NCBI RefSeq assembly: GCF_902713615.1
Contig: NW_024055497.1
Location: 1,903,584 to 1,967,583, forward strand
Direction of reading: 5' to 3'
Length of the DNA stretch: 64,000 nt
Source of the DNA: Scyliorhinus canicula
Taxonomy: Eukaryota
Both the position numbers and the translations under genes were made by a program. This document shows, piece after piece, positions 2,911 to 62,720 of this stretch (positions within the stretch are counted from its first letter, which is position 1; the number at the start of each line of letters is the position of its first letter). Under the pieces are notes generated by a model. That model had not been told where the DNA came from. It saw only the letters and a list, made by a program, of their open reading frames with translations, and searched no databases.

Positions 2911-3272
2911 GTGAGGAACACCCAGATAATTTAAACAAAAGAACCATGTAAACACCAGGGCCCATCTCCATGGCAACGTGGTACACTTTGGGGGGGTTTC
3001 AAACAGAAATGGAAACTAAATATCTTCAAACTTCCAAACACCCTTTCACTCTGTGATCCTTGTGCAATTTGAAGCCAGGTACCAGCAACAAGGCTCAAAG
3101 AGCATCAGCCCACTGGAGGCAAAGTAGTGAGACCGGCCAGTCTAGCAGAAAGAAACCCTTCGACCATCCCCACTGACCACCTGTCAGAATGAACAAAATG
3201 CAGTCCTGGGTGTAGAGCAGAAACAAGAACAGCAGAATCCAACCCCTGTAATCAATTGTGAAATTGTTGGTG

Positions 3273-4175
3273 TCACAACAGGTCCGAGGAAACAGACAAT
3301 CCCGTCTCACATTGAGAGGTGGACGGTCTGTTCCCAGTGTGAATTTGCTGGTGTGTCCGCAGGATAGATAACCGAGTAAATCCCTTCCCACACTGAGAGC
3401 AGGTGAACGGCTTCTCCCCAGTGTGAACTCGCTGGTGTATCTGCAGGGTGGATAACTGAGTAAATCCTTTCCCACACTGAGAGCAGGTGAATGGCTTCTC
3501 CCCAGTGTGAACTCGCTGGTGTGTCCGCAGGTGAGATAATTGAGTAAATCCTTTCCCACACTGAGAGCAGGTGAATGGCCTCTCCCCAGTGTGACCTTGC
3601 TGGTGGCTCAACAGATGAGATGAATCACGGAATCGTTTCCCACATTGGGAGCAGGTAAATGGCCTCTCCCCGGTGTGAATTCGCTGGTGTCTCAATAGGT
3701 GGGACAAATTACAAAATCCTTTCCCACACTGAGAGCAGGTGAACGGCCTCTCCCCAGTGTGAACTTGTTGGTGTCTCAATAGCTGGGACGAATCACAGAA
3801 TCCTTTCCCACACTGAGAGCAGGTGAACGGCCTCTCCCCAGTGTGAACACGCTGGTGTGACTGCAGACTGGATAATACAGTGAATCTTTTCCCACACTGA
3901 GAGCAGGTGAACGGCTTCTCCCCAGTGTGAACTCGCTGGTGTATCTGCAGATGGAATAACTGGGTGAATCCTTTCCCACACTGAGAGCAGGTGAACGGCC
4001 TCTCCCCAGTGTGAACTCGCTGGTGTGTCTGCAGGTTGGATAACTGAGTGAATCCCTTCCCACACTGAGTGCAGGTGAATGGCCTCTCCCCAGTGTGACT
4101 GCGTCGATGAGTCTCCAGCTCAGATGGGAATTGGTATCCCTTCCCACAGTCCCCACATTTGCACGGTTTCTCCAT
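3273..4175 (-). CDS. C2H2 zinc-finger protein A, 10 tandem fingers, no KRAB
   Basis: 300-aa ORF of CxxC-x12-HxxxH repeats with TGERPF linkers; acceptor at 4868-4869, putative exon-1 donor at 5792-5793. Confidence 0.9.
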
Positions 4176-4324
4176 TTTTGGGTCCCCTCGTGTCTCTCCA
4201 GGCTGGACAATCAGTTGAAGCCTCGTCTACAGACACAACATCCAACAGGGTATGGTCCCTCCCCGCTCTGAATGTTATGTTTTTCAGGCTGTGTAACTGG
4301 TTAAAGCTCTTTACACAGTCAGTT

Positions 4325-4496
4325 GAAATGAAAATGAAAGTCGCTTATTGTCACAAGTAGGCTTCAAATGAAGTTACTGTGAAAAGCCTCTAGTCGCCAC
4401 ATTCCAGTGATTGATCGGGAAGGCTGTTACAGGAATCGAACCTGCCTTGGTCTGCTTTCAAAGCCAGCGATTTAGCCCTGTGCTAAAGAGCCCCAG
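4325..4496 (-). mobile_element. Short tRNA-derived SINE (GGGGCTGGTTTAGC family) inside the ZNF-A leader exon
   Basis: Matches full copy at 15569-15752; (CATTT)n tail. Confidence 0.8.
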
Positions 4497-4725
4497 CACT
4501 GGAACACTCTCACTCGGGTGTGTGTTGTGTGGGTCTCGGTGCTTTTCCAGTCACACTGATGTTTCCAGTCAGTTCACTGGAACACTCTCACTGGGGTGTG
4601 TGTTGTGTGGGTCTCAGTGCTTTTCCAGTCACACTGATGTTTCCACAGTCAGTTCACTGGAACACTCTGACTCAGGTGTGTGTTGTGTGAGTCTCCGTGC
4701 TTTTCCAGTCACACAGATGTTTGAA
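4497..4725. repeat. ~75-bp tandem triplication of the ZNF leader segment
   Basis: CACTGGAACACTCT..GGTGTGTGTTGTGTG..GTCTC.GTGCTTTTCCAGTCACAC repeated three times. Confidence 0.85.
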
Positions 4726-5009
4726 ATCTTTGGTTGACAGTTTGGGCAAACATATGTCATTCCACAATCATAGTTTGAGGATATTCAGGTTCCAAGGAAG
4801 GGAGTGACTATCAGATCGAGATGTGACGTTTGAGATTTCTGTCAGTAATTCCTCCTCGTCTAATATCCTGTAAAAACATTTTACAAAATTCATCACTGTC
4901 AGTACAGGATAGAAACTCAGAACAGACAATTCTAGTTTCTATGTCATATTTTTTCCTCTCTTATTCCCCAAAGCTGCAAATCGCCATCCCACACACTTCC
5001 TCCATTCTC

Positions 5010-5236
5010 TTTTTTAAAATAAATTTAAAGTACCCAATTCATTTTTTTCCAATTAAGGGGAAATTTAGCATGGCCAATCCACCTACCCTGCACATCTTTG
5101 GATTGTGGGGGCAAAAACTACACAAACGCGGGGAGAATGTGCAAACTCCACATGGACAGTGACCCATAGCCAAGATCGAATCTGGGACCTTGGCGCTGTT
5201 GAGGCTGCAATGCCAACCACTGTGCCACCGTGCTGC
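5010..5236 (-). mobile_element. V-SINE short variant with AT-rich tail
   Basis: V core followed by CCCCTTAATTGGAAAAAAATGAATTGGGTAC tail; similar copies at 6660-6858, 7895-8045, 24308-24530, 36362-36583, 59190-59340. Confidence 0.8.
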
Positions 5237-5454
5237 TTCTCGCCCTCTATTCTTATTCTGCTGTATCTAATAATAATCTTTATTAGTGTCACAAGTGACA
5301 TTAACGCTGCAATGAAGTTACTGCGAAAATCCCCGAGTCACCATACTACGACGCAATTCACCCTCCCTATTCTCCTGAAAATGCTAATTCTGGCTGATTG
5401 ACAGATCCATGCTCACAGCTTCCTGTCCAGGAGGTCACAACAAATATGAGCTGC

Positions 5455-5590
5455 AACCAAAGAGAAAATGCTGGAAAATCTCAGCAGCTCTGGCAGCATC
5501 TGTAGGGAAAGAAAAGAGCGAACGTTTCGACCCTTTGTCATAGCTAAAAGACAGAGAAAGTGGGAAGTATTTACACTGTGGAGTGAGAAT
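5455..5590 (-). mobile_element. Short Penelope-type repeat with decayed hammerhead-like motif
   Basis: Reverse complement AGCTATGACAAAGGGTCGAAACGTTCGCT; homologous to 51292-51388 and 62865-62990. Confidence 0.55.
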
Positions 5591-5599
5591 GGAGTCATC

Positions 5600-6270
5600 T
5601 TTTCCTGTCTCTCTGGGTGACTAATGCAGTGACATTGTCACTGGGTCGGTGTCTCCCCCCTGGTCTCTATGAGGTTGTTTGTGGAGAGAAGCCGGAAGTG
5701 ACGGACAGAGAGTGGAAAATGTTCATTATTTCACATTCGGCTCTGGGGCCGCACTGGGGTTTGTAAACCCCGCCCCCAACACTGACCTCTCACCTGAGAC
5801 CTCACAATGCCAGGGCAATGATCGACGGCAACTCCTAACCAATAGGGTTCAGGGGGCGGATTCGGATGACCGGACAGTTCTCCAACCAATCGGAGTGAAT
5901 GAGGGGGAGGGACTGGGCCGAGTGAAGCATGCGCAGTGTTAATGGCGGCGCAGAGAAAATTCTTTCTCGGATCCATAATCCGTCAAGGTGGGAATGGCGG
6001 GACCGAGGGAGAGATGATCATCGCATCGTTGGACACACTTCGTAAATGCGTTACTATAAACCGAAAACCCGTAAGAAATAAACCTAACCGGTACCTGAGG
6101 GGGCCCTGAGCTGGGCCTGTAAGGGCTGAATTCTCACAGACAGGACTAATGGGGGCGCAGCCATCGCGGTCGCGCGCGAACGGGGGTTTGCGCTTTAAAT
6201 CACTTTATTTGGGCACCAGCAACAGTGCGCACGCGCACCCACCATCTTATTGGGGGCAGCAGCACGGAGT
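5600..6270. promoter_or_regulatory. CpG-rich, probably bidirectional ZNF promoter and exon 1 of ZNF-A
   Basis: Two CCAAT boxes, GC box, NRF1-like GCATGCGCAG, ETS CCGGAAGTG, YY1-like CCATCTT; homologous (inverted) to 52385-52930. Confidence 0.75.
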
Positions 6271-7174
6271 TCAGGCTCAGTCGCCATCATTGGTGAGGCA
6301 ACATTTTTCAAATGTTTTCATCATGACACTGTTTTACTGAGTTACAAATTCCTATTTATGAGACAGAACAATGATACATCTCCAGAACTGTGACAATAAT
6401 TCAGATTTATTTTGACAGAATAAAGCTTTTCAGACATTTCAGAGAATGTATCAAAAGTACCATTTGACAGTGGAGCCACAGAGGAGATATTAGATTTTAA
6501 GGATAACCTTAGATAGAGGAAAGTGAGTGAGAGTCGGAGATTTTTAAGGAGGAAATCAAGAGCTTGGTGGCCCAATCAAATGATAAAAGGTCAGTAATGG
6601 TGGACCGAATAAAATCAGGAATGCTGTCATGGTCGGAATTAAATGAGTGCAGGGACCTTCTTTTTTTTAATAAATTTAGAGTACCCAATTAATTTTTTCC
6701 ACTTAAGGGGCAATTTAGCGTGGCCAATTCACCTACCCTGCACATCTTTGGGTTGTGGGGGTGAAACCCACGCAAACATGGGGAGAATGTGCAAACTCCA
6801 CACGGACAGTGACCCAGAGCCGGGATCGAACCTAACCCACTGCGCCACTGTGCTGCCCTTAGTGCTGGGATCTTGAAGGGGTGTGTGTGGAGGAGATTAC
6901 AGAGATCAGGAGGATCACAACTATAGGAAAAGAAAATGGGAAATTTCACCTTTTGGTCCTTCTTAAAAGGAAAGTGAGCCCAGGGATGGGTAAACAAGAC
7001 TTGTTTGTATTGTATTTGTTTTGACACGTGTACTGTGGTACAGTGAAGAGTATTGTTCTGTGTACAGTCATGAGATCATAAGATACAGGAGCAGAATTAA
7101 GCAATTTGGCTCATCGCATCTGCTCCGTCTTTCTATCATAGCTGATATATTCCTCATCTGCTATCCTGTATCTA

Positions 7175-8220
7175 TCCTGTACTGATAGTGTGACCTTTGT
7201 GATCTCCTTTACAGGACATTGAGAGAGGATTTTCAGACTGGAAACACAAACCAAATATCACATTAAGATCCAACAGTGTCACTTGGTTGGTCAGAACCTC
7301 CCAGAGCTTGTTTGTTTCACGTGCGGCCATCTTGGTAAAGGGACAGTGACTGGGTGGGCTTCAGGGTCCCAGTGACCAGGAGAGAAAATAATTGATTCAT
7401 TGATGTTATTGACACGCTGCACAGAGGGGCCTGAGAACTGAAGCCAGTCAGAGTGCAGGGAGGGAGGAAATTGTGAATAAGGAAAGGAATCATGAAGATA
7501 ATGTAATCGGTTTGTTGGGCTGACCAACTCTCCTGGTGAAAAGCCTGCCCTGGGAGTCCATGCAAGTGGTGGATGAGGTGCTGCCAGAGTTGAGTGGATG
7601 GACACTGTCTGCAGGAGCTGTCAGAGCACAGATCAGTCTGGGACATTGTTTACGCAACCAGATATATCCAAACAGGAAAGTACAGGAAAGGAAATGAAAA
7701 ATAGCTTATTGTCACGAGTAGGCTTCAATGAAGTTACTGTGAAAAGCCCCTAGTCGCCACATTTCATTTCATTTTCATTACGGTGCCTGTTCAGGGAGGC
7801 TGGTACGGGAATTGAACCGTGCTGCTGGCCTGCCTTGGTCTGCTTTAAAAGCCAGCGATTTAACCCTGTGCTAAACCAGCCCCTATTATTCTAGCCCGGG
7901 TCACTGTCCGTGTGGAGACACTTTCTCCTCGTGTCTATGTGGGTCTCACCCTCACAACCCAAAGATGTGCAAAGTAGGCGAATTGGCCACGCCAAATTGC
8001 CCCTTAATTGGAAAAAAATAATTGGCTACTCTAAATTGCTATAAAGAAAGAATGGGTGGATTTACAGGGAGGAAGCTCAAACGGAACATCACAGCATAAT
8101 CTGATCTGAAAAAGTAATTCAGTTCCCCACGGCTCGAATATCATCAGTCTTTGGATTCAGAAGGAGAAATGTTTGTGATCTGCCTGTGAGACACCATTTA
8201 AAACATCAGCGTATCTGCCC
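7175..8220 (+). pseudogene. Remnants of ZNF leader exon(s), truncated before any finger array
   Basis: TTTACAG|GACATTGAGAGAGGATTTTCAGACTGGAAACACAAACCAAATATCAC at ~7215 and GAATATCATCAGTC..GAAGGAGAAATGTTTG at ~8135 match the leaders of the other ZNF genes; cut by CR1 at ~8220. Confidence 0.6.
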
Positions 8221-10765: not shown

Positions 10766-13458
10766 CTTTAGATGGAGTGGGAGATTTCTAACTGAGTAAT
10801 ATTCACCTCCTATCAAAGAAGCAAAAATGAGAACGTCGGCCCAACCCCCGAATGGAGCCGGAAAGTCCGAGACTCCAAATATTGCTGCCAGTGGGCCAGG
10901 TTCTGGGGCCACCCGTAAAATCTGAGATTTCCTATCAAAAAGGAAACCCAGTAGATAACAAGGTGCCGAATGTTGTGAGTATCCTCATTGTGTTATCTAC
11001 AGAGGGTCTGAAATATACAGAAGTAGACCATCGGCGTAGAGTGATACCCGGTGCTCCACTCGACCCGGCAGATACCCTTCCACTCATCGGATGACCTCAA
11101 AACTATTGACAGAGGTTCAATAGCAAATGCAAAGAGCAGCGGGGAAAGGCAACAGCGCTGTCTATTGTCCTGCCTCATGGAAACTATTATAAAGATACCG
11201 TATTCGTACAGATGTTGGCTTTAGGGGCAAGAGGTACAGTTACGGCCAAAACTAAATCTCCCGGAGGTAGTTCCATTCCACCCTATCCAATACTTTCTCT
11301 GCATCCAAAGATACGATGACTTCAGGTCCCAGGGCAGTGGCGGGGAAAAGGGCAATGTTTAAGAGGTTTCGGACATTGTCTGACAGCTGTTGGCCTTTAA
11401 TAAAGCCTGTCCGATCCTCAGACACTATAACTGGGAGACAGGGCTCCATTCAGGAAGCCAGGACCTGAGCCAGCAGTTTATCATCTGTGTTAAGAAGTGA
11501 AATGGGTCGGTTTGACCCACGTTCTACTGGGTGCCTTCTGGCGGATTGCAGCCACCAATACATTTCAGTGTTTCTCCTGGGAATCACGGGGTGTCCAAGT
11601 TCCAACTCCTGCTTTCCTCTATGGTCGGGATGTGCAGACCATCTAGAAAACTCTTCATACCTGAAGTGTTTGGAGAAGCTCTGACTCATACAGCTTATGG
11701 TTATACGAGCTGAAAGCAGCATTAACCTGGAGAGGAGCTGAAACCAAGTTACCTTCCTTGTTCCAAACCAAAGGGGTTTCTCGAGAGGCAGTCTGCCTCG
11801 AGTTGATATGCAGGAAGTCAACCCACCTCCTCCCCATGTTCACACACGGTGCCCTGGAACGCCGTAACTGATGTAGGCCTTATCCGTAGATATCAATTCA
11901 AATTGGAGCTGTAAATTTGTTCTGTGTATCAGTCGATCTGGGGTTGGGGCAAGTGAGTATTGACAGTCAACTTTCAAGATGGAGTCCACCAGCCTTTGTC
12001 GTTCCACTCTCTCCGTTTCATGATGTGATCCTGATATGAGATCATCTTCCCCCCTTATGACGGCCTTTAGGATTTCCCAAAGTGCCAAAGGAGATATTGA
12101 CTCTATTTTGTTGACCTGAATAAAGTCTGCTATGGCAGCAGACAAATGCCCACAAAATTTATCATCAGACATCAAAGTGGCGTCTAGTCTCCAAGGTGGG
12201 TGTTTGGAAGGACCAAAACCAAAACGAAAATCAACAAAATGAGGGTCATGATCAGAGATGACAATCGCCGAGTATTCGGCTATCACCACTGAAGGAGGAG
12301 GGACTTAACAATCAAAACGTCAATTCGGGAATAGGCACGGTCAACATGAGAAAAAAAAGGAAAATTCTTTCCTGTTTGGATGCAGGGAAGGCCATGGACC
12401 CCCCCCGCCCCTCACCAATCCATCCCATAAATGAGGGCAGTGCCCTGGACATCCCAGATGGGCTCAGAGATTTAGTCATGGAACAGTCCAATCACGGGTC
12501 CAAGGCACAGTTCAGGTCACCTCCTAGAATCATCGATGCGAATATAAGTCAGGGAGGAGGTTCACCGAAGAGTTTCCAAAATTTGGATCATCCCAGTTAG
12601 GAGCAGAAATGTTTACGAAAATAACCGGAGTGTTTTCCAGTGAACCACAGACAATAATATAGCGACCATTGGGATCGTCCATAATCCGAGAGGGGGTAAA
12701 TTGTCCTATTTATGGATTAGTATTGCCGTGCTTCTAGCCCGACCGTTAAAGCCGGAATGAAAGACTTGTCCCACCCAATATCTGCAAAGCCTTATCTGGA
12801 CATTCACATACAGATGGATTTCCTGTAGAATACGACACCCGAGTTTAGACCCTTAAAATGAGCAGAAACCCCAGCCTGCTTCACTGGACCATTTACCCCA
12901 AATATTCCAGGTTACAAGGCCAAGTGGAGATCTCCCATTAATTCCTACATCGGGGTCAGCCATAACTTCTGAAGAATATCAAGCAAGGGATCTTGACAAG
13001 CCAAAGGTGAGGAGATCCATCCAGGACGACAACCAAGCCCAGTACAATGACCAGACAGACACAGAGTAGTGACCCCGTCAAACAACTAACACCCTCTCCA
13101 TCCCTCCCTAACCCAACAACACCCATCAGTAATATTACCCAACAATCCCTTATCTCTAAATCTCTACACATCATAATCCGACCACAACAATATTCTGAGC
13201 TCCTATTCACACGGTGTTTGGGACGAGGAGCTGCAGCCCACCCACTTTTGTCCCTCCTGTCAGCTAACCTCATCCTGAGCTGGGAGGCTCTCCAATGAAC
13301 CATAGACTCAAAGAAAAACTCTTACATAGATATAATTCATAATGCAACCAGAGTGCGAAGAAGAAAAAGTACAACACGTGTAAAACCCAACAATAACTTC
13401 ATATCCTAAATTTTATACAATGTAAAAACTCCTGAACCTCAAAACACAGAGTAACTTA

Positions 13459-16350: not shown

Positions 16351-16583
16351 GCGTACTATCCAGGATAAAATTAATGTATCACATCTGCCTCTGTGGATCA
16401 TTTCAGTGGAAATGTGCTGTCGCTGAAAAAGAGTATCAGCCCACTGGAGTGAACATTGGAAGACTGGCCAGCCCACAGAGAAACCTTCTGACCCCCAACT
16501 TCACCAACTGTCAGAATGAACATGGTTCAGTCCTGGATGTGATCAAGAACAGCAAAAATCAGCAGAATCCAACCCCTGTAATT

Positions 16584-16929
16584 CATAGAATTTACAGTGC
16601 AGAAGGAGGCCATTTGGCCCATCGAGTACGCACCGGCTCCTGGAAAGAGCACCTCATCCAGGCCCACACCTCCACCCTATCCCCATAACCCAATAACCCC
16701 ACCCAACACTAAGGGCAATTTTGGACACTAAGGGCAATTTATCATGGCCAATCCACCTAACCTGCACATCTTTGGACTGTGGGAGGAAACCGGAGCACCC
16801 AGAGGAAACCCACGCACACACGGGGAGAACGTGCAGACTCCGCACAGACAGTGACCCAAGCTGGGAATCGAACCTGGGACCCTGGAGCTGTGAAGTAATT
16901 GTGCTAATCACTTTGCTACCGTGCTGCTC
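16584..16929 (-). mobile_element. V-SINE inserted at the ZNF-B stop codon
   Basis: Full head/core/tail; TSD TAATT at 16579-16583 and 16930-16934. Confidence 0.9.
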
Positions 16930-16932
16930 TAA

Positions 16933-17691
16933 TTACTTGTGATCTCGCTGGTGTTTCTGCAGGTAGGATGTACTGCTGAATCCTTTCCCACACGTGGAGC
17001 AGGTAAATGGCTTCTCCTTAGTGTGAACTCGCTGGTGTCTCAGTAGGTTGGATGAATTAACAAATCCCTTCCTACACACAGAGCAGGTGAATGGTCGCTC
17101 CCCAGTGTGAAGTCGCTGATGTGTTACCAGGTTGGATGAATTAATGAATCCTTTCCCACATTCTTTGCAGGTGAATGGCCTCATTGCAGTGTGAACTCGC
17201 TGGTGTGTCAGCAGATTGGAGGAATTAACAAATCCCTTCTCACACACGGAGCAGGTGAACGGTCTCTCCCCAGTGTGAATTCGCTGGTGTGTTACCAAGT
17301 TGGATGAATTAATAAATCCCTTCTCACACACATTGCAGGTGAATGGCTTCTCTGCGGTGTGAACTCGCTGGTGTGTCAGCAAGTTGGATGAATTAGTAAA
17401 TCCCTTCTCACACACTGAGCAGGTGAACAGCTTCTCCTCAGTGTGAATTTGCTGGTGTGTCAGTCGGCTGGATGAATCTATGAGTCCTTGCCGACACACT
17501 GAGCAGGTGAATGGCGTCTCCCCGGTGCGAACTCGCTGGTGTGTGAGCAGGTTGGATGAAGCAGTAAATCCCTTCCCACACTGAGAGCAAATGAACAGTC
17601 TCTCCCCAGTGTGACTGCGTCGATGAGTTTCCAGCGCAGATGGGGAAGTGAATCCTTTCCCACAATCCCCACATTTCCACAGTTTCCTCAT
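16933..17691 (-). CDS. C2H2 zinc-finger protein B, 9 fingers (finger 2 lacks last His)
   Basis: 252-aa ORF; acceptor at 17846-17847; putative exon-1 donor GG|GTGAGT at 20789-20790. Confidence 0.88.
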
Positions 17692-18239
17692 GATGCAGCT
17701 GTCCGTGACGCGGTGCTTTTCCAGTCACACTGATGGTAAAATAGCCGATGGTTTTCCCCGTCCTAACAAATCGAGTGACTCTGTCAGATCTCAATGTGAA
17801 GTTTGGTTTGAGATTTCTTGCAGCAAATCCTCCCCTTTGAATCTCCTGTTAAAGGGGTTTACAAATATCATCACCGTCAGTACAGCTCAGAAATTCAGAA
17901 CAGACAATTCTAGTGGAACATGCTTTCCTCTCTCGTTCCCCAAAAGCTGTAAATTTCACCCTGTACACACACACTCTCTCCTATCTCACTCCATTATCTA
18001 ATATACACCCTCCCTATTCTCCTGATCGACAGGTCAACACTCAGCGTTTCTAGTTCTCAACCGAGAGATCATAAGATCCTAAGAAATAAGAGTAGGCCAT
18101 TCGGCCCATCAAGCCTGCTCTTCCAGCTAATATCATGGCTGATCTGATCGTGACCTTAACTTCATTTTCTTCCTGTCACCCATAACCCTCAACTCCCTTG
18201 AAGATCAAAAATCTAACTGAGCCTTGAATATATATATAT

Positions 18240-23953: not shown

Positions 23954-25410
23954 GGGTGAGATTCTCCATCGGCTGACACCGGAATCGCAAAACGTGATTG
24001 AGTGAAGAATTGGTTCTGACTCCAAAATCATGGCGGGCACCGATTTCATGCCAAATCACAATTATCCATCACATCTACAGTGGTGTCAATACATTTCAGA
24101 ATGCACACACAGTTAGACACTGTTTACATATCATTAGGGTGGCACAGTGGTTAGCACTGTTGCTTTGCAGCTCCAGGCTCCCAGGTTCAATTCCCAGCTA
24201 GGGTCACTGCCTGTGCAAAGTCTGCAAGTTCTCCCCATGTCTGCATGGTTTTCCTCTGGGTGCTCCGGTTTCCTTCCACAGTCCAAAGATGTGCAGGTTA
24301 GGTGGATTTTTAAAAATATAAATTTAGAGTACACAATTCATTTTTTCCAATTAAGGGGCAATTTAGCATGTTCAATCCACCTACCTTGCACATCTTTAGG
24401 TTGTGGGGGCGAAACCCACGCGAACATGGGGAGAATGTGCAAACTCCACACGGACAATGACCCAGAGCCGGGATCGAACCTGGGACCTCAGCGCCATGAG
24501 ACTACTACTGCACCAACATGCTACCCACCACGTTAGGTGGATTGGCCATGCCAAATTGCCCTTAGTTATCAAAATCATTGGGTGGGGTTACGTGGATAAG
24601 GTGGAGGTGTGGACTTGGGTAGGGTGCTCTTGCCAAGGGCTGCTGCAGACTCAATAGCCCCCATGGCCTCCTTATGCACTGTAAATTCTAGAATTCTATG
24701 ATTAGTGGACCTGACTGAGTATTCTCCACGGCCTCCATGATTCTCTGCCTCCAATGGCCCAAATTCCTGACGGCGAGGTTCACTTGTGCATTTAAAAATT
24801 GTGAAACAGGCACCATCGCTGATGAGGGGATAGGGAACGTGTGCAACATTGTCATAGTTCAATGACATTTGTGCCGCTGGGTGGGGGGGGGGGGGGGGGG
24901 GGTGGGATGCTTCTACCAGGGTTGGGGGAGTAGCTGGGGATAGCCAGGATTTCAGCTGTGTGGTGGACTGGCACGGAGCATCATTACCGCAACCTGCAAG
25001 GTAACCATGCAGCTGTGTATACCGGTGACTGCCCATTGTGAACTTAGAGCCACAGGTCTCATGGGTGTCCCCCCCGGCACCACGGTATGTGCCCTCTGGC
25101 CTCAGCCGACTCCTCAGCAAGATGATGCGCTCCAGCGTAACCAGTGCCATCTTGTTGGCTGGGATGAGTATGTGAGAGGAGCGTAATGTGTATATGCGAC
25201 TACAGCTTGTCAGCCTCCCGAGTGTCAATCACAGACCCAGTGAGTCCCACACCATTTCTCAATGGCATTGCTTGGATGTTCCACGTGGCGCCGGTGTGAA
25301 GCCCTCCAAAGTCACTGAATCGGTCCACGTACGGCGCCAGTTTTGCTGCCGTGGTAGTCCACAAATCCTGCCCCTGCATCACTTAGTCTCAGGAATGGAG
25401 AGTCCCGCCC
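23954..25410. mobile_element. GC-rich non-autonomous DNA element (Harbinger-like TIRs) with nested SINE-in-SINE (24137-24700)
   Basis: Imperfect TIRs GGGTGAGATTCTCC / GGAGAGTCCCGCCC; related end GGGCTGGATTCTCCC at ~29158. Confidence 0.55.
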
Positions 25411-25709: not shown

Positions 25710-25985
25710 TTCAGCCAATGAGGGAGATCGCGGCTCAGCCCCGCCCCTCATTCATTCTGATTGGTGGGAGAATGAGTAGCTCGTGCTCGGTACTCCAGTC
25801 CCGCCCCCTCTTCCAATTGGTCCGGAAATGCCGTCAATCAGCCGGGCCTTGGTTCCGGAGCATGCGCAGAGCTGGACACCAATGCGCAGGCGTCGTGTCA
25901 AAGAGTTTGGAGCATGCGCAGTGTGATTGATGCCTGGGCCCTTGTTTGTCCCGGAGAAGCGGAGTCAGCGTCAGGCGGTGGGTGG
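25710..25985 (+). promoter_or_regulatory. Promoter/exon 1 of ZNF-C
   Basis: CCAAT boxes, GC boxes, two GCATGCGCAG NRF1-like sites, ATTGG-N10-CCGTCAATCA, donor at 25978. Confidence 0.75.
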
Positions 25986-26648
25986 GAGGATTTGGAAACA
26001 CTTTGTGGGTCCGCAAACCCTTCACCATTATTGTCAGCTCCCTGCTTTGCAGCTGCGGAGCTTCTCCCTCCCTCCCGGGAACAGGCCCAGGTTAACGGGC
26101 ACCATCCTGCTTCACACACTGGAGGGTGGTTCACATCACAGGATGGGGGAGGGGGGATAATAAATAAGAGCTGACACTTTGCACTCAAATCAATGAGGAC
26201 TCTGATCTCTGGCAAAGAAGGAAACCCTGGCAGGTGGGCGGGGAGGATTCACCAACACCTGCTGGAGGCCCCAAACCCCCTGTATGCTGACGGTGATGGA
26301 TTTTGTAAAATTATTTTTACAGGATATTAACAGACATGAAACTCAAACCAAACTTCACATCAAGATCCTTCAGTGATTTGATTCATCAGAATCTGAATAT
26401 CATCAGCCTTTGTATACAGAAGGAGAAATGTTTGTTCCGTTCTGTCTGTGGAAAAAGATCTGAGCCATCAGTGTGAGTGAGAAAGCACCGAGATTCGCAA
26501 ATACCCGAGAGAGAGTTTCCAATGTGCTGAACCTGGAAAGAGCTTTCACCAGCCTGAAAGCAAAACCACAGCATTCACCCTGGACATATTCTGTGTCAAC
26601 GAGGCTTCAACATTACCCAACCTGGAGACACACGAGGACACTCATATC

Positions 26649-27881
26649 ATGGAGAAACTATTGAAATGTGGGGACTGTGGGAAGGGATTCAATTACCCAT
26701 CTGCATTGGATATTCATCGACGCATTCACACTGGAGAGAGGCCTTACACCTGCACTGTGTGTGGGAAAGGATTTGCTTACTCATCCAGCCTGTATACACA
26801 TCAGCGTGTTCATACTGGCGAGAGGCCATTCACTTGCCTCGAATGTGGGAAGGGATGTAATGCTTTATCAAGCCTTCTGATTCACCAGCAAGTTCACTCT
26901 GATCAGAGACCGTTTCAATGTTCTGATTGTGACAAAAACTTTAAAAGCACAAAGGACTTGCTGAGACACCAGCGCACTCACATGGAGGTGAGGCCTTTCA
27001 CCTGCTCAGTGTGTGGGAAGGGATTCACTCAGTCATCCCACCTTCTAACACACCAACTTGTTCACTTTGATAAGAGACCTTTTCAATGTTCGCACTGTGA
27101 GAAGTGTTTTAAAAGTAAAAATGATTTACAAGCCCATCAACGCACACACACTGGGGAGAAGCCGTTCACCTGCTCTCTCTGTCAGAGGAGATTTGGACGT
27201 TTATCCCAGCTACAGACACACCAGCGAGTTCACTCTGATCAGAGACCATTTCAATGTTCTGATTGTGAGAAGAGCTTTAAAAGCAAACAGGATCTGGTGA
27301 CACACCAGCGAGTTCACACTGGAGAGCGGCCATTCACCTGCTCTGTGTGTGGGAAGGGATTCACCCATTCATCCCACCGTCTGAGACACCAGCGCATTCA
27401 CACTGGAGAGAGGCCGTTCATTTGCTCTGTGTGTGGTAAGGGATTTGCTGATTCGCCCCACCTTCTGATACACGAGCGAATTCACACTGGAGAAAGACCT
27501 TTCACTTGCTCCATGTGTGGAAAGGGATTCACTCAGCCATCCCAGCTTGCTGTACATCAACTTGTTCACACTGATCACAGACCTTTTAAATGTTCTGACT
27601 GTGAGAAGAGCTTTAAGTGCACAAAGGACCTTCTGAGACACCACCAAGTTCACACTGGGGAGAGGTCATTCACCTGCTCCATGTGTGGGAAGAGATTTGC
27701 TCAGTCTTCCCACCTGCTGAGACACCGGCAGGTTCACACTGGGGAGAGATCATTCAGCTGCTCCATGTGTGGGAAGAGATTTGCTCGGTCATCCAATCTG
27801 CTGAGACACCAGCGAGTTCACAAGTCACTGCAGGGGTTAGATTCTGCTTTTGCTGCTGCTGTTAATACCATGCAGGACTGA
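26649..27881 (+). CDS. C2H2 zinc-finger protein C, 14 fingers plus ~19-aa tail
   Basis: 410-aa uninterrupted ORF; acceptor TTTTACAG at 26321-26322. Confidence 0.92.
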   Translation: MEKLLKCGDCGKGFNYPSALDIHRRIHTGERPYTCTVCGKGFAYSSSLYTHQRVHTGERPFTCLECGKGCNALSSLLIHQQVHSDQRPFQCSDCDKNFKSTKDLLRHQRTHMEVRPFTCSVCGKGFTQSSHLLTHQLVHFDKRPFQCSHCEKCFKSKNDLQAHQRTHTGEKPFTCSLCQRRFGRLSQLQTHQRVHSDQRPFQCSDCEKSFKSKQDLVTHQRVHTGERPFTCSVCGKGFTHSSHRLRHQRIHTGERPFICSVCGKGFADSPHLLIHERIHTGERPFTCSMCGKGFTQPSQLAVHQLVHTDHRPFKCSDCEKSFKCTKDLLRHHQVHTGERSFTCSMCGKRFAQSSHLLRHRQVHTGERSFSCSMCGKRFARSSNLLRHQRVHKSLQGLDSAFAAAVNTMQD

Positions 27882-27914
27882 ACCATGTTTATTCTGTTAT
27901 TAAGGAGGTTGGAG

Positions 27915-41195: not shown

Positions 41196-41227
41196 CGTAA
41201 CGGTGCGGGGGGGGGGGGGGGGGGGAG

Positions 41228-43565
41228 TGGGATACGGACTAGACTGGCTGTGGAGAGGGGATCAGACTGGCTGTGGAGAGTGGATTAGCCTGGGTGTGGA
41301 GGGGGTCTTAGCCTGGGTGTGGAGAGTGGATTAGCCTGGGCATGGAGAGGGGATTAGCCTGGGTGTGGAGAGAGGATTAGACTGGGTGTGGAGAGGGAAA
41401 TAGACTGGATGTGGAGAGGGGATTAGACTGACTGTGGGGGGGGATTAGACTGGGTGTGGAGAGGGGATTAGACTGGGTGTGGAGGGGAATTGACTGGGTG
41501 TGGAGAAGGGATTAGACGGTGTGGAGAGTGGATTAGACTGGGTGTGGAGAGGGGATTAGACTGGGTGTGGAGGGGAATTGACTGGGTGTGGAGAGGGGAT
41601 TAGCCTGGATGTGGAGAGGGGATTAGACTGGGTGTGGAGAAGGGATTAGACGGTGTGGAGAGTGGATTAGACTGGGTGTGGAGAGGGGATTAGACTGGGT
41701 GTGGAGAGGGGATTAGACTGGGTGTGGAGAGGGGATTAGACAGGGTGTGGAGAGCGGATTAGACAGGGTGTGGAGAGGGGATTAGACTGGGTGTGGAGAG
41801 GGGATTAGCCTGGGTGGGGAGAGGGGATTAGACTGGGTGTGGAGAGGGGATTAGACTGGGTGTGGAGAGGGGATTAGACTGGGTGAGAGGGGATTAGACT
41901 GTGTGGAGAGGGGATTAGACTGGGTGGAGAGGGGATTAGACTGGGTGTGGAGAGGGGATTAGACTGGGTGTGGAGAGGGGATTAGACTGGTGTGGATAGG
42001 GGATTAGACTGGTGTGGAGAGGGATTAGACTGGGTGTGGAGAGGGGAATTAGACTGGGTGTGGAGGAGGGGATTAGACTGGGTGTGGAGAGGGGATTAGA
42101 CTGGGTGTGGAGAGGGGATTAGACTGGGGTGTGGAGAGGGGATTAGACTGGGTGTGGAGAGGGGATTAGACTGGGTGTGGAGAGGGGATTAGACTGGGTG
42201 TGGAGGGGATTAGACTGGGTGTGGAGAGGGGATTAGACTGGGTGTGGAGAGGGGATTAGACTGGGTGTGGAGAGGGGATTAGACTGGGTGTGGAGAGGGA
42301 TTAGACTGGGTGGAGAGGGGATTAGACTGGGTGTGAGAGGGGATTAGACTGGGTGTGGAGAGGGGATTAGACTGGGTGTGGAGAGGGGATTAGACTGGGT
42401 GTGGAGAGGGGATTAGACTGGGTGTGGAGAGGGGATTAGACTGGGTGTGGAGAGGGGATTAGACTGGGTGTGGAGAGGGGATTAGACTGGGTGTGGAGAG
42501 GGGATTAGACTGGGTGTGGAGAGGGGATTAGACTGGGTGTGGAGAGGGGATTAGACTGGGTGTGGAGAGGGGATTAGACTGGGTGTGGAGAGGGGATTAG
42601 ACTGGGTGTGGAGAGGGGATTAGACTGGGTGTGGAGAGGGGATTAGACTGGGTGTGGAGAGGGGATTAGACTGGGTGTGGAGAGGGGATTAGACTGGGTG
42701 TGGAGAGGGGATTAGACTGGGTGTGGAGAGGGGATTAGACTGGGTGTGGAGAGGGGATTAGACTGGGTGTGGAGAGGGGATTAGACTGGGTGTGGAGAGG
42801 GGATTAGACTGGGTGTGGAGAGGGGATTAGACTGGGTGTGGAGAGGGGATTAGACTGGGTGTGGAGAGGGGATTAGACTGGGTGTGGAGAGGGATTAGAC
42901 TGGGTGTGGAGAGGGGATTAGACTGGGTGTGGAGAGGGGATTAGACTGGGTGTGGAGAGGGGATTAGACTGGGTGTGGAGAGGGGATTAGCCTGGGTGTG
43001 GAGAGGGGATTAGACTGGGTGTGGAGAGGGGGTTAGATGGTGTCGAGAGGGGATTAGACTGGGTGTGGAGAGGGGATTAGACTGGGTGTGGAGAGGGGAT
43101 TAGACTGGGTGTGGAGAGGGGATTAGACTGGGTGTGGAGAGGGGATTAGACTGGGTGTGGAGAGGGGATTAGACTGGGTGTGGAGAGGGGATTAGACTGG
43201 GTGTGGAGAGGGGATTAGACTGGGTGTGGAGAGGGGATTAGCCTGGGTGTGGAGAGGGGATTAGACTGGGTGTGGAGAGTGGATTAGACTGGGTGTGGAG
43301 AGGGGATTAGACTGGGTGTGGATAGGGGATTAGACTGGGTGTGGAGAGGGGATTAGACTGTGTGTGGAGAGGGGATTAGACTGGGTGTGGAGAGGGGATT
43401 AGACTGGGTGTGGAGGGGGGATTAGACTGGGTGTGGAGAGGGGATCAGCCTGGGTCTGGATAGGGGATTAGACTGGGTGTGGAGAGGGGATTAGACTGGG
43501 TGTGGAGACTGGTTTAGACTCCACGCACAGAGAGGTGAGATTGGGTGTGGATAGAGGGATTAGCC
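41228..43565. repeat. 23-bp G-rich minisatellite (~100 units)
   Basis: Unit GATTAGACTGGGTGTGGAGAGGG, highly homogeneous in the centre. Confidence 0.97.
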
Positions 43566-43617
43566 TCCGTGCGGCATTAATGAAAATGCTGGTCACACAT
43601 TCGTTTCTCACCAACAG

Positions 43618-48172: not shown

Positions 48173-48189
48173 TTTATGTGTTATGGTGT

Positions 48190-49329: not shown

Positions 49330-50283
49330 TTACTTGTGGCCTCGTTGGTGTCTCCGCAGGGAGGATGACTGAGTGAATCCCTTCCCACACTTGGAGCAGG
49401 TGAATGGCCTCTCTCCGGTGTGAACTCGCTGGTGTGTCTGCAGGGCAGATAACTGAGTGAATCCCTTCCCACACTTGGCGCAGGTGAATGGCCTCTCCCC
49501 AGTGTGAATTCGCTGGTGCTTCTGTAGGACGGATGAAGTGCTGAATCCCTTTCCACACTTGGAGCAGATGAATGGCCTCTCCCCAGTGTGAATTTGCTGG
49601 TGCGTCTGCAGGTCGGATGATTGAGTGAATCCCTTCCCACACTTGGAGCAAATGAACGGTCTCGTCCCAGTGTGAATTCGCTTATATACAGTGAGGTGAG
49701 ATGAGTGTCTGAACCCAGTCCCGCAGTGAGAGCACCTGAATGGTCTCTCGTCTGTGTGAATACGTTGGTGGAGCATCTGTTCCCCAGAACTTTTAAAGCA
49801 CTTCCCGCAATCTGGACATTGGAACGGTCTCTCTCCAGTGTGAATTCGCTGGTGTCTCAACAGGTGGGCTGAAATAGTAAATCCCTTCCCATACTTGGAG
49901 CAGGTGAATGGTCTCTCCCCAGTGTGAACTCGCTGGTGTGTGGACAGAGTGGATGACCGAGTGAATCCCTTCCCACACTTGGAGCAGGTGAATGGTCTCT
50001 CCCCAGTGTGAATTCGCTGGTGTGTGGACAGAGTGGATAACCGAGTGAATCCCTTCCCACACTTGGAGCAGATGAATGGTCTCTCCCCAGTGTGACTGCG
50101 TCGATGAATTTCCAGCTTGGATGGGGAAGTGAATCCTTTCCCACAGTCCGCACATTTCCACGGTTTCTCCTCAGTGTGACTGCATTTGTGGCTTGTGAGG
50201 CCTGGTGATTTACTGAAGCCTCGTCCACACACACAACACGTGTACGGTTTCTCCCCACTGTGAACGATGCTTTTTCCTTCCAT
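49330..50283 (-). CDS. C2H2 zinc-finger protein E, 11 fingers (two with ligand substitutions)
   Basis: 317 aa from MEGKSIVH; acceptor at 50391-50392; frame also open from the acceptor to the ATG. Confidence 0.9.
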
Positions 50284-50589
50284 GTTCAAAATCCGATGAT
50301 ATTCAGGATATGATAAATTGAGGACTCTGTCAGATTCTGATGTGATGCTTGGTTCGAGTTTCCAGACTTTGAAGCCTCCCTTCGAACATCCTGTGAAACT
50401 GATTGAAAACAGAAAATAGGGAGTGAGAGAACTCACAAAAACACAAAGGCAGGTTGTGAAATTGAGCTGAATGAATCTGGTCATTTGTGGGGCCGGCACT
50501 GGGAAAAAGTGACCATGAAAACTGCTGGATTGTTGTAGAAAAACCCAACTGGCCTCTTTGGGAGGAGAGAGAAAGAGGCGAAGAGGGAT

Positions 50590-52235: not shown

Positions 52236-52384
52236 TACTTTTATACAGACAGATTTATTCTGTTAAAGACACAATATAAACACAAATGATTGTCATTGAC
52301 CTGATATCATTGTTCAGCGCCATCGATAATAAATTGGAGTTGAAAGAGTTTAATGAACAATTCGTTCGCTCTGTTACTGGGTAA

Positions 52385-52930
52385 TTTCAAAAATATTGCC
52401 CCTAACAAAGATGGCGGGTGCGCATGCGCGGTCGCCGCCAGTACCTTCAATAAAGATGGCGAAAGCGCATGCGTCCTGCTCCCAATACCCCCGACAAAAA
52501 TGGCGGACATTAACCCGGGTTTGTAATTGAGGAAAGCTGCGGCCCTGCTCTGTGCAAAGGGCGGGGGCCCATCCCGGATATCGGTAGGTTATTTTTCATG
52601 GGTTTGCGTTTCATATAACATGTTTACACAGCTTCTCCAGACCCCCGCCTGATCCATAGCTCCCCCGGTTCCACCATACCCATCTCTGCGGATTATCGAA
52701 CCAAAATGAACCGTCTCTGCACCGCCATTAATCACACTGCGCATGCCTCGCAAGACCGAGCCCTCGCTCACTGGGATTGGTTGGAGGACCAGTCACTCCC
52801 GCTTGGTCCTCCAGACCCGCCTCCTCTTTCCCTATTGGTCTGGAGATGCCGTCAATCATTCCCTTGTGAGATTCCAGGTGAGAGGTCAGTGACAATGTCA
52901 CTGCATTACACACCCAGTGAGACAGGAAAA
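52385..52930. promoter_or_regulatory. Bidirectional CpG promoter between ZNF-E (-) and ZNF-F (+)
   Basis: Three AA(G/A)ATGGCG YY1 sites, NRF1 palindrome TGCGCATGCGC, two inverted CCAAT boxes, ATTGG-N10-CCGTCAATCA, donor CAG|GTGAGA at 52878. Confidence 0.8.
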
Positions 52931-53365
52931 TGTTCTGGGGACATGGGCTCCAATCCATTCAATTAATAAAATCTGGAATTTAAAGTTAACCTCAATGATG
53001 GTGACTGAGGCTCCACTGAGAAAATCTCCACACAGTCAGTTTCTGGACACAAGGTTAACGTCTGTTACTGTGTCTGCTCAGTCTGGGTGATTCAGATTCA
53101 TGTCTGTGACAAATTATGAGTGAATTTATCTCCAGATCGTTAAAAGGATCTGGAAACAATTTGCCAAAACATTTTTGGATTTCAGCCCATTGAAGAGGGA
53201 GAGTGTGTGGGACGGGGATTCACAGTTGGATTGGATTGGATTTGTTTCTTGTCACGTGTACCGAGTAACAGTGAAAAGTATTTTTCTGCAAGCAGCTCAA
53301 CAGATCATTCAGTTCTGGGGGAATGAGAGGGAAAAAATGTTCCAGAGAAACTAGAATTGTCTGTT

Positions 53366-53711
53366 CATAGAACATAGAACAGTACAGCACAGAACAGGCC
53401 CTTCGGCCCTCGATGTTGTGCCGAGCAATGATCACCCTACTCAAACCCACGTATCCACCCTATACCCGTAACCCAACAACCCCCCCCCCCCCCTTAACCT
53501 TACTTTTATTAGGACACTACGGGCAATTTAGCATGGCCAATCCACCTAACCCGCACATCTTTGGACTGTGGGAGGAAACCGGAGCACCCGGAGGAAACCC
53601 ACGCACACGGGGAGGACATGCAGACTCCGCACAGTGACCCAGCCGGGAATCGAACCTGGGACCCTGGAGCTGTGAAGCATTTATGCTAACCACCATGCTA
53701 CCCTGCTGCCC
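53366..53711 (-). mobile_element. HE1-like V-SINE, young subfamily
   Basis: Near-identical to 945-1266 and 63472-63814; splits the conserved ZNF pre-acceptor block. Confidence 0.9.
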
Positions 53712-53768
53712 CATTCAAAATTTCTATCCTGGACTGATACTGGGTACTCTTGTAAACTCCCTTTACAG

Positions 53769-54963
<1,195 letters not shown>

Positions 54964-59337: not shown

Positions 59338-59522
59338 TTATCAGTAAATTATCCCGAGGACACTGTCACCTCCAGCCCTGGATATCACCATCCTCCTAAT
59401 CCGGATCAGTAAATTATTCCGATGAGATCGTCACCTCCAGCCCCGGAGATCACCATCCCCCTGATCCGGGATCAGTAATCCATTCCGAGGAGACTGTCAC
59501 TTCCAGCCCCGGAGATCAGCAT
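59338..59522. repeat. ~64-bp tandem repeat, three copies
   Basis: ATCAGTAA..CCGA.GA.A..GTCAC.TCCAGCCC.GGA.ATCA repeated. Confidence 0.8.
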
Positions 59523-59579
59523 TCAAACGAGCAGGAACTAGTATTCTCTCCAGTAACTTCTGAATTCTACCGCTTAACT

Positions 59580-60322
59580 TAAAGACACTTGTCCATTAAT
59601 CCTGCTTGATTTAAAGATACATGTCCATTAATCCTGCTTGACGTAATCTTTGGGGTAGCTTCGGAGCCGGGAGTGCAGGAGGCGAGAGAGGCCGGCATTC
59701 TGGCCTATGCGTCTCTAGTAGCCCGGCGCAGGATTCTGTTATGGTGGAGGGATACGTGGCCCCCCGAGTTCGGAGGCCTGCATCAACGACACGGCTGGGT
59801 TCATCAAGTTGGAGAGGATGACGTTTGCCCTGAGGGGGTCGGTACAGGGGTTCTTTCGGCGGTGGCAGCCCTTTCTCGACTTCCTGGTGAAGGGGTAGAG
59901 AGTGGTCAGTCTCAGCAGCAACTTTGGGGGGGGGGGGGGGGGGGTTTGGGATGGTTAGGGGGTTTGTTTTTACGGCGGTGGGTTTGCTATGTTGTTATTT
60001 TCTTCTTTCTTGTATTGCTGTTGGTTTTTTGTTATTATTTATTTGGGGGGGGTGAGTTCTTTTCTTGTGTTGGTGTGGAAACACGCCTTGTTTGTTTTAA
60101 ATTGTGGGGAGAAAATTTGTTATTGAAAAACTTGAATAAAAATTATTTTTTTTAAAAATCCTGCTTGACGTAAAGATACATGTCCATTAATCCTGCTTGG
60201 CGTAAAGATACATGTCCATTAATCCTGCTTGATTTAACGATACGTGTCCATTAATCCTGCTTGACGTAAAGATATGTGTCCATTAATCCTGCTTGATTTA
60301 AAAATACATGTCCATTAATCAT
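59580..60322. repeat. 32-bp tandem repeat interrupted by an L1/Tx1 3' end (59647-60156, +)
   Basis: Unit GTCCATTAATCCTGCTTGA(TT/CG)TAAAGATACAT; insert encodes ILAYASLVARRRILLWWR and ends AATAAA; ATCCTGCTTGACGTAA on both sides. Confidence 0.85.
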
Positions 60323-60677
60323 CCATGGATCAAAAATAATAACGACAAAATAAGAGATAGTGAAAATAAGGGAATAAACAGGAAGGAGCCTTACAACTGT
60401 TATGGGTCACATGTATTTTCTGCCAATTTAGCTGGTGTACCATATCTAACCTGTTGTTTTTTCATAAACTCTTCAAAATTATCAATGACATGGACCCCCC
60501 TTTTTGGGTAAACTCTGACTCGCGGACTAAAATCTTAAGTTTCCAGCATTCATCATTAATCTTGTCGCCTCTAAATACAGTTGTAAAGGAGCCTTCTGTC
60601 TGTATCTAGCAGCTCTGAACCATGGAAGAGAGCGACTGTGGCGCGTTTCTTACACACCTCAGTATTAACCCACACAT

Positions 60678-61656
60678 TCAGTCCTGGATCTGATTGACAG
60701 CAGCAAAAACAGCCGAATCCAATCCCTGCAGACACTTATCAAGTCGCTGGTGTTTCAGCATAAACTGTAAGTCAGTGAATCCATTCCCACACTCAGGGCA
60801 GATGAACAATCTCTCTCCAGTGTGAACTTGCTGGTGTTTCATTAGACTACTGCTGCTTCTAAAGCTGTGCTCACAGGCAAAACATTGAAGAGGTTTCATA
60901 TCAGAATGAATTTGTTGGTGTTTCAGCAGGTTGTATGACTGAGTGAATCCCTTCCCACACACAGAGCAGGTGAATGGTCTCTCCCCAGTGTGAATCCGCT
61001 GATGCATTACTAGACCGTTGCTGCTTTTAAAGCTCTGCACACAGACAAAACATTTAAAAGGTTTTAGATCAGAGTGAATTTGTTGGTGTTTCAGTAGGTG
61101 ATATGACTGAATGAATCCCTTCCCACACACAGAGCAGGTAAACGGTCTCTCCCCAGTGTGAATTCGCTGATGTACAGTAAGTTCAGATGATCGCCTGAAG
61201 CCAGTCCCGCAGTGAGAGCACCTGAATGGTCTCTCGTCAGTGTGAACACGTTGATGACAGGTCACTTCCCCGGACGTTTTAAAGCACTTCCCACAGTCTG
61301 GACATTTAAAAGGTCTTTTATCAGTGTGAACTCGCTGGTGTTTCTGAAGGTTAGATGCAGCAGTGAATCCCTTTCCACACAAGGAGCGGATGAATGGCTT
61401 CTCCTCACTGTGAATGTGTTGGTGTCTCAAGATACTTTTAGCTTTTAAATCTCTTCCCACATTCAGAGCATTTAAAAGGTGTCTGTTCTGTGTGAACATA
61501 CTGGTGTGTCAGCAGGCTGGATGACTGAGTGAATCCCTTCCCACAGGTGGAGCAGGTGAACGGCCTCTCCCCAGTGTGACTGCGTCGATGCATTTCCAGT
61601 TCAGAAGGGTAACTGAATCCCTTCCAACAGTCCCCACATTTCCACGGTTTCTCCAT
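60678..61656 (-). pseudogene. C2H2 zinc-finger gene G, disrupted in finger 3
   Basis: MEKPWKC.. ORF stops at TAA (61438-61440) with an adjacent frameshift; the downstream frame keeps six intact fingers. Confidence 0.8.
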
Positions 61657-62309
61657 GGTGCCGGTGTCCTTGTGTCTCTCCAGGTTGAATGACAAGTTGA
61701 ACTCTTGTCCAGACACACAACACATGGACGGTTTCGCCCCACAGTCAATGGTGTGATGGTTTTTCTGTCTATGTAACTGGTTAAAGCTCTTTCCACGGTC
61801 AGTTCATGGAACACTTAATGTGTATGTGCGTCTCGGTGCTTTTCCAATCACACTGATGTTTAAAATCTTTTCCCACAAACTGAACAGACAAACGTTACTC
61901 CTTCCACATTCAAAGACTGTGATATTCAGGTTCGAAAGAATTGAGTGACTCTGTCAGATCTCGATATTTGGTTTGAGTTTTCTGACAGCCAATCTTCCGC
62001 TTCGAACCCCCTGTAAAAGTAGTTTATAAAAGCCATCACCATCAGTCCAGGATATAAATTCTGAACAGGCAATTCTAGTTTCTCTGGAACATTTTTCCCT
62101 CTCTTGTTCCCCCAAAGCTGTAAATCCCCGTCCCACACACTCTCCCTCCTCCCTGGGCTGAAATTCAAACCCATCTCACCATCTGCACCATTTCTTCCCT
62201 CCACTCCCAGTTTTCTCCCTCCCTCCCTCTCTGCCTGGGTTCAGTTCTCCAGCTCCTGTTTGCAGACTGACAATAAAACCAATGGGTCTTATTGGGGGGT
62301 TTGGGGCCT

Positions 62310-62720
62310 CCACTCACCCGCCTGAATCCAGCTTCATATCCAGACTACGCATGCTCCAACTCACAATGGCTGGGGAGTGATTGACGGTGGCTGCTGACCA
62401 ATAGGAAGAGTGCAGTCCAGGAGTGGCTTTACCGGCCGCCATCTTGGGAAAGGGAGGCGGTTCTTTTTTTCTTGGAGCGGAGCGCTGGGGCGGCCATCTT
62501 AGTATGGGAAGAGGGAGTGCCCGGTGACAGGCCGCGGGGCAACCGGCGACCGCCGCCATCTTTGGAATGGAAGACGGGTCTTTTGTTCCGGGAGCGGAGC
62601 GCTGGAGCGGCCATCTTAGTACAGGAAGACGGAGTGGGCGGGACTTTCTCCCCGGTGACAGGCCCCGGGTCACCCGGCGGGCGCCGCCATCTTATGGCGG
62701 GATTTACTATCCGGGTCTTC
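62310..62720 (-). promoter_or_regulatory. CpG promoter/exon 1 of ZNF-G with clustered YY1 sites
   Basis: Donor at 62316-62317, TGATTGACGG-N10-CCAAT at 62378-62402, five GCCATCTT motifs in a ~118-bp duplication. Confidence 0.8.

Follow-up and report, generated by a model that had tools for sequence, protein, structure and literature searches.

In a 64,000-nucleotide stretch of the genome of the shark Scyliorhinus canicula (assembly GCF_902713615.1, contig NW_024055497.1, positions 1,903,584 to 1,967,583 of the forward strand; hereafter "the window", numbered from its first letter), we identified a cluster of C2H2 zinc-finger (ZNF) genes that most likely belongs to an old family found across elasmobranchs, in which genes of two exons encode nothing but tandem C2H2 arrays, a reading to which we give a probability of about 0.8. 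The loci of the cluster are paralogous and have a common anatomy, and the window contains no effector exon. Each gene would consist of a CpG promoter with CCAAT boxes, a short non-coding exon 1 and a short intron, followed by an exon 2 made of a 5′ leader of dead fingers and then 8-14 live fingers; translation in the main gene type would start from a methionine created in the linker that precedes a constant signature finger. The cluster would have grown through segmental duplications, some of which at least copied head-to-head pairs centred on a single CpG island, with transposon insertions, duplication of fingers within arrays, fast change of contact residues and loss of some copies as probable later steps. 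Its proteins are most likely sequence-specific DNA-binding proteins. The family is apparently undescribed, and a limited literature search found no paper describing these fingers-only shark genes, which seem to be a fairly ordinary variant of the lineage-specific ZNF clusters.

Six-frame matching across the whole window recovered 55 C2H2 fingers, of which 53 fall within six arrays (loci A to F, Table 1) and one within the leader of F. A tblastn search of the window with array C as query returned the same six array sites, with all other matches at noise level. The fingers are arranged in tandem with TGEKP-type linkers, each array lies in one exon, and the six arrays are clustered within 59 kb, as is typical of KRAB zinc-finger protein (KZFP) genes. 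The initial annotation had counted at least seven copies, a number that is reached only when an array-less remnant is added to the six loci with arrays.

The non-coding architecture that had been proposed as common to these loci was borne out by alignment of about 1.5 kb upstream of the arrays and of single segments. A promoter block carrying a pair of inverted CCAAT boxes (ATTGG..ATTGGTC N CCGTCAATCA) is exact in C, E and F and has one mismatch in A; the spaced pattern gives 3 exact matches, against 0 expected. All four blocks lie inside CpG islands, and a GT donor is predicted shortly 3′ of each of them. Locus B corrects the picture of uniform architecture, as no promoter block is recognisable there. 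A conserved intron block of about 140-160 nt is present in A, B, E and F (pairwise identity 68-85%), while C and the remnant keep just its last 45-60 nt and D is without it. In A, B, C, E and F, the acceptor region combines a branch-point-like motif (CTGAC or CTGAT), about 35 nt before the pyrimidine run, with ACAG/G at the junction, which reads TTTTACAG/G; D has CACAG/G (positions in Table 1). Leaders start with GATATT../..CTCAAACC..CACAT..AGATCTGA in all loci and range from 154 to 692 nt in length. Exon 1, the donor sites, the splice junction and expression of these genes are predictions drawn from sequence conservation. Special constraint on the intron block was considered and rejected, because at 59-80% identity it is about as conserved as the leader (59-75%).

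Two further observations concern single cassettes. The leader of locus A (4176-4867, minus strand) is double the usual length and contains about three tandem dead-finger units and an insert that starts like the head of a tRNA-derived short interspersed nuclear element (SINE). Just upstream of the CCAAT block of F (62435-62693, minus strand) are five AAGATGGC[GC]GC motifs, which resemble the YY1 consensus and are spaced 55-76 nt apart. This motif has 10 matches in the window against 0.76 expected, and Tandem Repeats Finder found no tandem repeat in the motifs upstream of F.

The array itself opens with a constant first finger, whose pattern ..[KR].W[KE]CG[DE]CGKG[FY]..PS.L..H.RSH is found in 6/6 loci, in decayed form in E. 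Its start, MEKPWKC, is exact in F and varied in loci such as C, and in D the motif is internal. At the DNA level, first fingers are 81-89% identical among A, B, C, D and F, compared to 59-80% for the intron end and leader. On the other side of the array, a 3′ tail of about 70 nt past the stop codon is common to the loci. In B, a SINE at 16581-16927 directly follows the stop codon and interrupts this tail, which continues beyond it.

The leader consists of decayed fingers. Translated in the frame of the fingers, the F leader gives ..LNVEGVTFVCSVCGKRF(stop)TSV(stop)LEKHRDAHTH.. and continues with two further decayed fingers. The leader ends in a decayed linker, and the start methionine thus occupies the former glycine of a TGEKP linker. 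A TGA in the first dead finger (..CAGTGTGAnTGGAAAAGCAC..) is common to A, B, C, E and F, with D lacking that part of the leader, and in A, B, C and F the frame of the start codon extends upstream by just 33-168 nt, ending well before it reaches the acceptor. A, B, C and F thus have stops in frame on the way from the acceptor to the ATG, and the leader of E carries the common TGA, so that no upstream exon can extend the protein at these five loci. Locus D is an older-looking gene type, with one more finger and an open leader. It has no counterpart of the first two dead fingers and retains the third as a live finger, its leader is in frame and open back to the acceptor at 50391, and its translation probably begins at MEGKS. 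The open leader and the additional finger of D had escaped the initial annotation.

At the other end of the protein, the family stop codon after ..HK has turned into a sense codon in C (TCA) and F (TGT), and the frame runs for 19 codons more to the same downstream TGA, through sequence homologous to 3′ untranslated region (UTR). The resulting 19-residue tail was considered as a possible effector and rejected, since A, B, D and E (4/6 loci) stop directly after ..HK.

The absence of an effector-domain exon, which had been noted initially from the letters of the window, was confirmed by Pfam and tblastn searches and by a KRAB hidden Markov model (HMM), along with the leader stops. In each of the seven reading frames submitted to Pfam, zinc-finger families were the sole matches. 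When the pre-finger regions of 231 ZNF proteins, many of them with KRAB, SCAN or PR/SET domains, were searched against the window by tblastn, nothing was found outside the arrays and leaders save weak or transposon-derived matches. The KRAB HMM, built from 45 boxes and giving at least 80 bits to its own training sequences, reached a maximum of 4.4 bits over the 2740 six-frame open reading frames of the window. The N-termini of PRDM9-like proteins from Cetorhinus and Rhinoraja, which would reveal a PR/SET domain ahead of an array, had no match in the window. An upstream coding exon of the FiNZ type is excluded by the leader stops in A, B, C and F and by the shared TGA in E, although the FiNZ sequence itself was not searched. 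One KRAB-like tblastn match (11621-11725, minus strand, E = 0.028) was rejected as chance-level, and the KRAB HMM did not recover it.

Copies in the cluster range from intact to vestigial. Loci A to D have open frames throughout their arrays (Table 1), with a zinc ligand lost from one finger of B (a histidine) and from two fingers of D. The array of E is broken: its first finger is present in duplicate and contains a stop, and the frame shifts several times. In F the frame from the start codon meets a stop after 72 codons, the remaining array being readable in another frame. Birth-and-death evolution, as initially suggested for this family, fits a cluster with four arrays still open, two broken and a single stump, in which non-coding identity is 59-80%. 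Each cassette also has its own SINE or CR1-like insertions, which together with this level of identity indicates that the duplications are old.

Part of this history can be read from the CpG islands. The islands at 5700-6400 (A/remnant) and 52300-52960 (D/E) are homologous on both outward-facing sides. One side of both islands carries a CCAAT block and the opposite side GCATGCGCAGTGTGATTAATGGCGG.., and a GCGCATGCGC-plus-GCCATCTT element also recurs at a depth of about 450 nt. This homology of both sides indicates that a head-to-head pair was duplicated as a single piece, a point that had been missed initially. Head-to-head pairs around one CpG island are thus seen for A/remnant and D/E, but not for B/C, which do face each other but are 8 kb apart and share no island.

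Signatures of selection differ between the parts of the finger. Among 51 compared fingers, amino acids vary most at helix positions -2, -1, 3, 5 and 6. Nei-Gojobori estimates from 42 nearest-neighbour finger pairs, which are crude counts, gave a ratio of nonsynonymous to synonymous change (dN/dS, or omega) of 0.74 at positions -1, 2, 3 and 6 versus 0.35 for the scaffold (Fisher p = 0.002). Within arrays, scaffold omega was 0.15-0.35, and purifying selection is acting on the finger scaffold. The dN/dS check that had been proposed for diversifying selection at the helix did not demonstrate it, as the contacts do evolve faster than the scaffold, but with a within-array omega of 0.66-0.89, i.e. 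below 1; the contact omega of 1.63 in array B derives from just 6 synonymous differences. Contacts that change fast while the scaffold is constrained are usual in poly-ZNF families; they fit diversifying selection without proving it, and a similar picture would result from relaxed constraint, shuffling of fingers or mistaken orthology.

A comparison between species gave a parallel result. The best match of D in Scyliorhinus torazame is 85% identical over the searched region (residues 67-176 of the D open frame, i.e. the leader peptide and first fingers). If the two are taken as orthologues, identical residues amount to 4/16 at the contacts of variable fingers and 53/68 in the scaffold (p ~1e-4), with 34/40 in the leader peptide. 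Recognition helices were initially described as differing widely, and this holds between genes but not inside locus B, where five consecutive fingers have an almost identical recognition helix (xNSSNL[LV]T). Such near-identity suggests a recent duplication within the array, and the sequence of these helices would predict a periodic, simple target.

Beyond Scyliorhinus canicula, whole-protein searches were dominated by many-finger proteins of all vertebrates and cannot give family size or taxonomic limits. When the returned proteins were filtered for the signature finger, only cartilaginous fishes were left, namely Scyliorhinus torazame, Pristiophorus japonicus, Heptranchias perlo, Rhinoraja longicauda and Hemitrygon akajei. 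One Pristiophorus japonicus protein starts with the methionine-start first finger of the family, and another contains NLERHKDTCTMDKPWECGDCGKG / NLERHKDTCTMDKPWEC, i.e. a dead linker as in F. Judging from these relatives, the methionine-start gene type appears to have arisen before the two shark superorders separated, and the signature finger appears to have existed before sharks and rays diverged. These relatives are sharks, a skate and a ray, and thus give evidence for the family in elasmobranchs, a narrower group than the chondrichthyans to which it had been attributed.

Whether the proteins are complete as bare arrays depends on what may lie upstream of the cassettes. An effector could be encoded on distant, possibly shared 5′ exons beyond the cassette and be joined to the arrays by long-range splicing, a scenario that we consider quite unlikely. 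Support comes from Scyliorhinus torazame gene models, which span 17.5 kb and 243 kb and place N-terminal stretches of about 55 to about 220 residues ahead of related finger exons, and one of which matches the pre-finger leader peptide of the family (..ESLNALGAEYHLPEKMEGK..). It is also helped by the leader of D, open in frame from the acceptor, and by an annotated 795-residue model that covers the region. However, leader stops (in E, the common TGA) block any such extension of A, B, C, E and F, the N-terminal parts of the torazame models have no Pfam family and no match in the window, and the leader frame of D is shifted relative to a 509-residue torazame protein, as expected of non-coding sequence. 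Very long models in ZNF clusters are, in addition, often chimeric, and the 795-residue model may be one of these.

Several results nonetheless weigh against a family of two-exon genes encoding bare arrays. The far-upstream exons of the torazame models leave room for long-range 5′ exons at D. The 795-residue model, on the minus strand at about 16.6-37.9 kb, spans more than 21 kb and overruns both ends of the stretch around C. In exact-product look-ups, only C was matched, to a single-exon gene of 410 residues annotated in GCA_902713615.2, and A, B and D (the latter with two possible starts) had no annotated match. For locus C, rows of a sequencing-run index guessed to be RNA and rows guessed to be DNA hold an equal share, about 0.5, of the intron-plus-leader words. 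Finally, the dN/dS values are pairwise counts on repeated units, and the comparison of D with the torazame protein assumes orthology.

The decay visible in the cluster also raises the question of whether any copy is still in use. The cluster could be a graveyard in which no copy functions any more, made of relics that lost the N-terminus of an ancestral, domain-bearing ZNF gene, and the decayed-finger leaders, the broken arrays of E and F, the array-less remnant and the zinc ligands lost from B and D all point in that direction. We nevertheless judge this very unlikely, as it is opposed by frames of 252-410 codons that are open in loci A to D, by the scaffold omega of 0.15-0.35, and by the conservation of the first finger and start codon context in proteins of a sawshark, a sevengill shark, a skate and a ray. 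Even less credible is a spread of the cassette as, or within, a transposon or retrocopy instead of by segmental duplication, which we regard as close to excluded. The region is rich in SINE and CR1-like copies, some of them within cassettes, but these lie at different sites in each cassette and are therefore later insertions. The copies moreover retain their intron and promoter and are thus not retrocopies, and homology between them extends no further than the promoter island on one side and about 70-100 nt past the stop codon on the other, with no terminal repeats seen. Duplication of genes encoding bare finger arrays hence remains our preferred reading of the cluster.

Table 1. Features of the zinc-finger cluster, in window coordinates (AG end, last position of the acceptor; slash, predicted splice junction)
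Feature	Positions	Strand	Remarks
Locus A, coding part of exon	3273..4175	-	300 codons, 10 fingers
Locus A, leader	4176..4867	-	dead-finger 5′ UTR; lengthened by internal duplication and SINE-like insert
Locus A, conserved intron end	4868..5030	-	branch-point motif and acceptor; AG end 4868
Locus A, promoter block and putative short exon 1	5794..5905	-	two inverted CCAAT boxes, CCGTCGATCA
Locus A, predicted donor	5794/5793	-	CAG/GTGAGA
Remnant, island side	5915..6120	+	promoter/exon-1-like; outward side of A island, homologous to D side of D/E island
Remnant, intron end, acceptor and leader start	7168..7299	+	
Remnant, leader piece with first fossil finger	8136..8212	+	no array downstream
Locus B, coding part	16933..17691	-	252 codons
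Locus B, short leader and conserved intron end	17692..18005	-	leader 154 nt (deletion); AG end 17846
Locus C, promoter block and putative exon 1	25740..25977	+	ATTGG boxes, CCGTCAATCA, two GGAGCATGCGCAG
Locus C, predicted donor	25977/25978	+	GCG/GTGGGT
Locus C, intron end and leader	26263..26648	+	last 60 nt conserved; AG end 26322; 326-nt leader with three dead fingers
Locus C, coding part	26649..27881	+	410 codons, 14 fingers, 19-codon read-through tail
Locus C, read-through tail	27822-27881	+	homologous 3′ UTR
Locus D, coding part from MEGKS	49330..50283	-	317 codons; extra intact finger precedes EKPWKC finger
Locus D, leader	50284..50391	-	open frame from acceptor to array; CACAG/G, G at 50391; without conserved intron block
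D/E common CpG island	52300..52960	.	D leftwards, E rightwards; homologous to 5700-6400
Locus E, promoter block	52770-52877	+	predicted donor CAG/GTGAGA at 52877/52878
Locus E, conserved intron block	53195..53768	+	split by SINE at 53363-53712; AG end 53768
Locus E, leader and decayed array	53769..54960	+	array ~54227-54960; first finger duplicated (54133, 54227)
Locus F, array	60678..61656	-	MEKPWKCGDCWKGF; 72-codon frame, stop 61438-61440; seven further fingers in another frame (open 60678-61508)
Locus F, read-through tail	60678-60737	-	homologous 3′ UTR
Locus F, leader and conserved intron block	61657..62175	-	leader 354 nt, three dead fingers, common TGA; AG end 62011
Locus F, promoter block and putative exon 1	62318..62470	-	predicted donor GCGG/GTGAGT at 62318/62317

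Other features of the window lie between the cassettes. The annotation that includes C also has a 280-residue plus-strand gene starting near 34.25 kb of the window. A stretch of SINE-like repeats that includes 24420-24462 lies between B and C, outside all ZNF cassettes, and two large tandem-repeat arrays adjoin each other at 38764-43574. The first of these (38764-41201) has self-match offsets in steps of about 52 nt, with 80-85% identity between shifted copies, and matches part of the SINE family scattered over the window; the second (41236-43574) is G-rich, with about 93% identity.

KRAB zinc-finger proteins are the textbook transposon-recognition system of vertebrates and are tied to sarcopterygians. 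The shark cluster resembles the KZFP clusters of tetrapods, lungfish and coelacanth in having its arrays in one large 3′ exon, in its clustering and birth-and-death turnover, and in its fast contact residues on a conserved scaffold within transposon-rich surroundings. Unlike these, however, the shark genes have no KRAB exon or other N-terminal domain, and the protein starts inside the former array, which leaves no obvious handle for recruitment of the TRIM28 type. KRAB families have been reported to be lacking in cartilaginous fishes (PMC8455134). The shark genes also resemble the domain-less poly-zinc-finger genes known across animals (PMC10547256, PMC2443715), which likewise encode fingers only, duplicate in tandem and are lineage-specific. 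They differ from them in their stereotyped dead-finger leader with its shared stop codon, in a first finger that is almost invariant across sharks and rays, and in the duplication of head-to-head pairs.

A more speculative proposal, which we consider unlikely but not negligible, is that the constant first finger, together with the preceding finger in the D type, may act as an effector or adaptor that recruits a co-repressor instead of reading DNA. Sharks and rays would in that case run a KRAB-independent, finger-only form of transposon tracking and silencing, with the variable fingers under diversifying selection. If the proteins are merely ordinary sequence-specific transcription factors, the present analysis amounts to little more than a useful annotation, covering gene structure, the start codon, pair-wise duplication and which copies are live or dead.

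ZNF expansions have been described across metazoans, along with the cyprinid FiNZ family (PMC10547256), for which a role in relation to transposons was shown by knock-down (Wells et al. 2023, PMC10547256). Like the shark genes, FiNZ-ZNF genes are lineage-specific, KRAB-independent and made of two exons, with a constant N-terminal element and variable fingers, and they are proposed to follow transposons, as has also been proposed for the shark family. The two differ in the nature of the constant element, since FiNZ, a domain of 28 residues that is not a finger, is encoded by a separate upstream exon, whereas exon 1 of the shark genes is apparently non-coding and their constant element is itself a zinc finger. 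Overall, the cyprinid FiNZ genes show that other lineages can build a system parallel to that of the KRAB zinc-finger proteins, and the shark family, which is large, old and found in both sharks and rays, is a candidate counterpart for cartilaginous fishes, one that raises the question of whether a zinc finger can itself be the effector.

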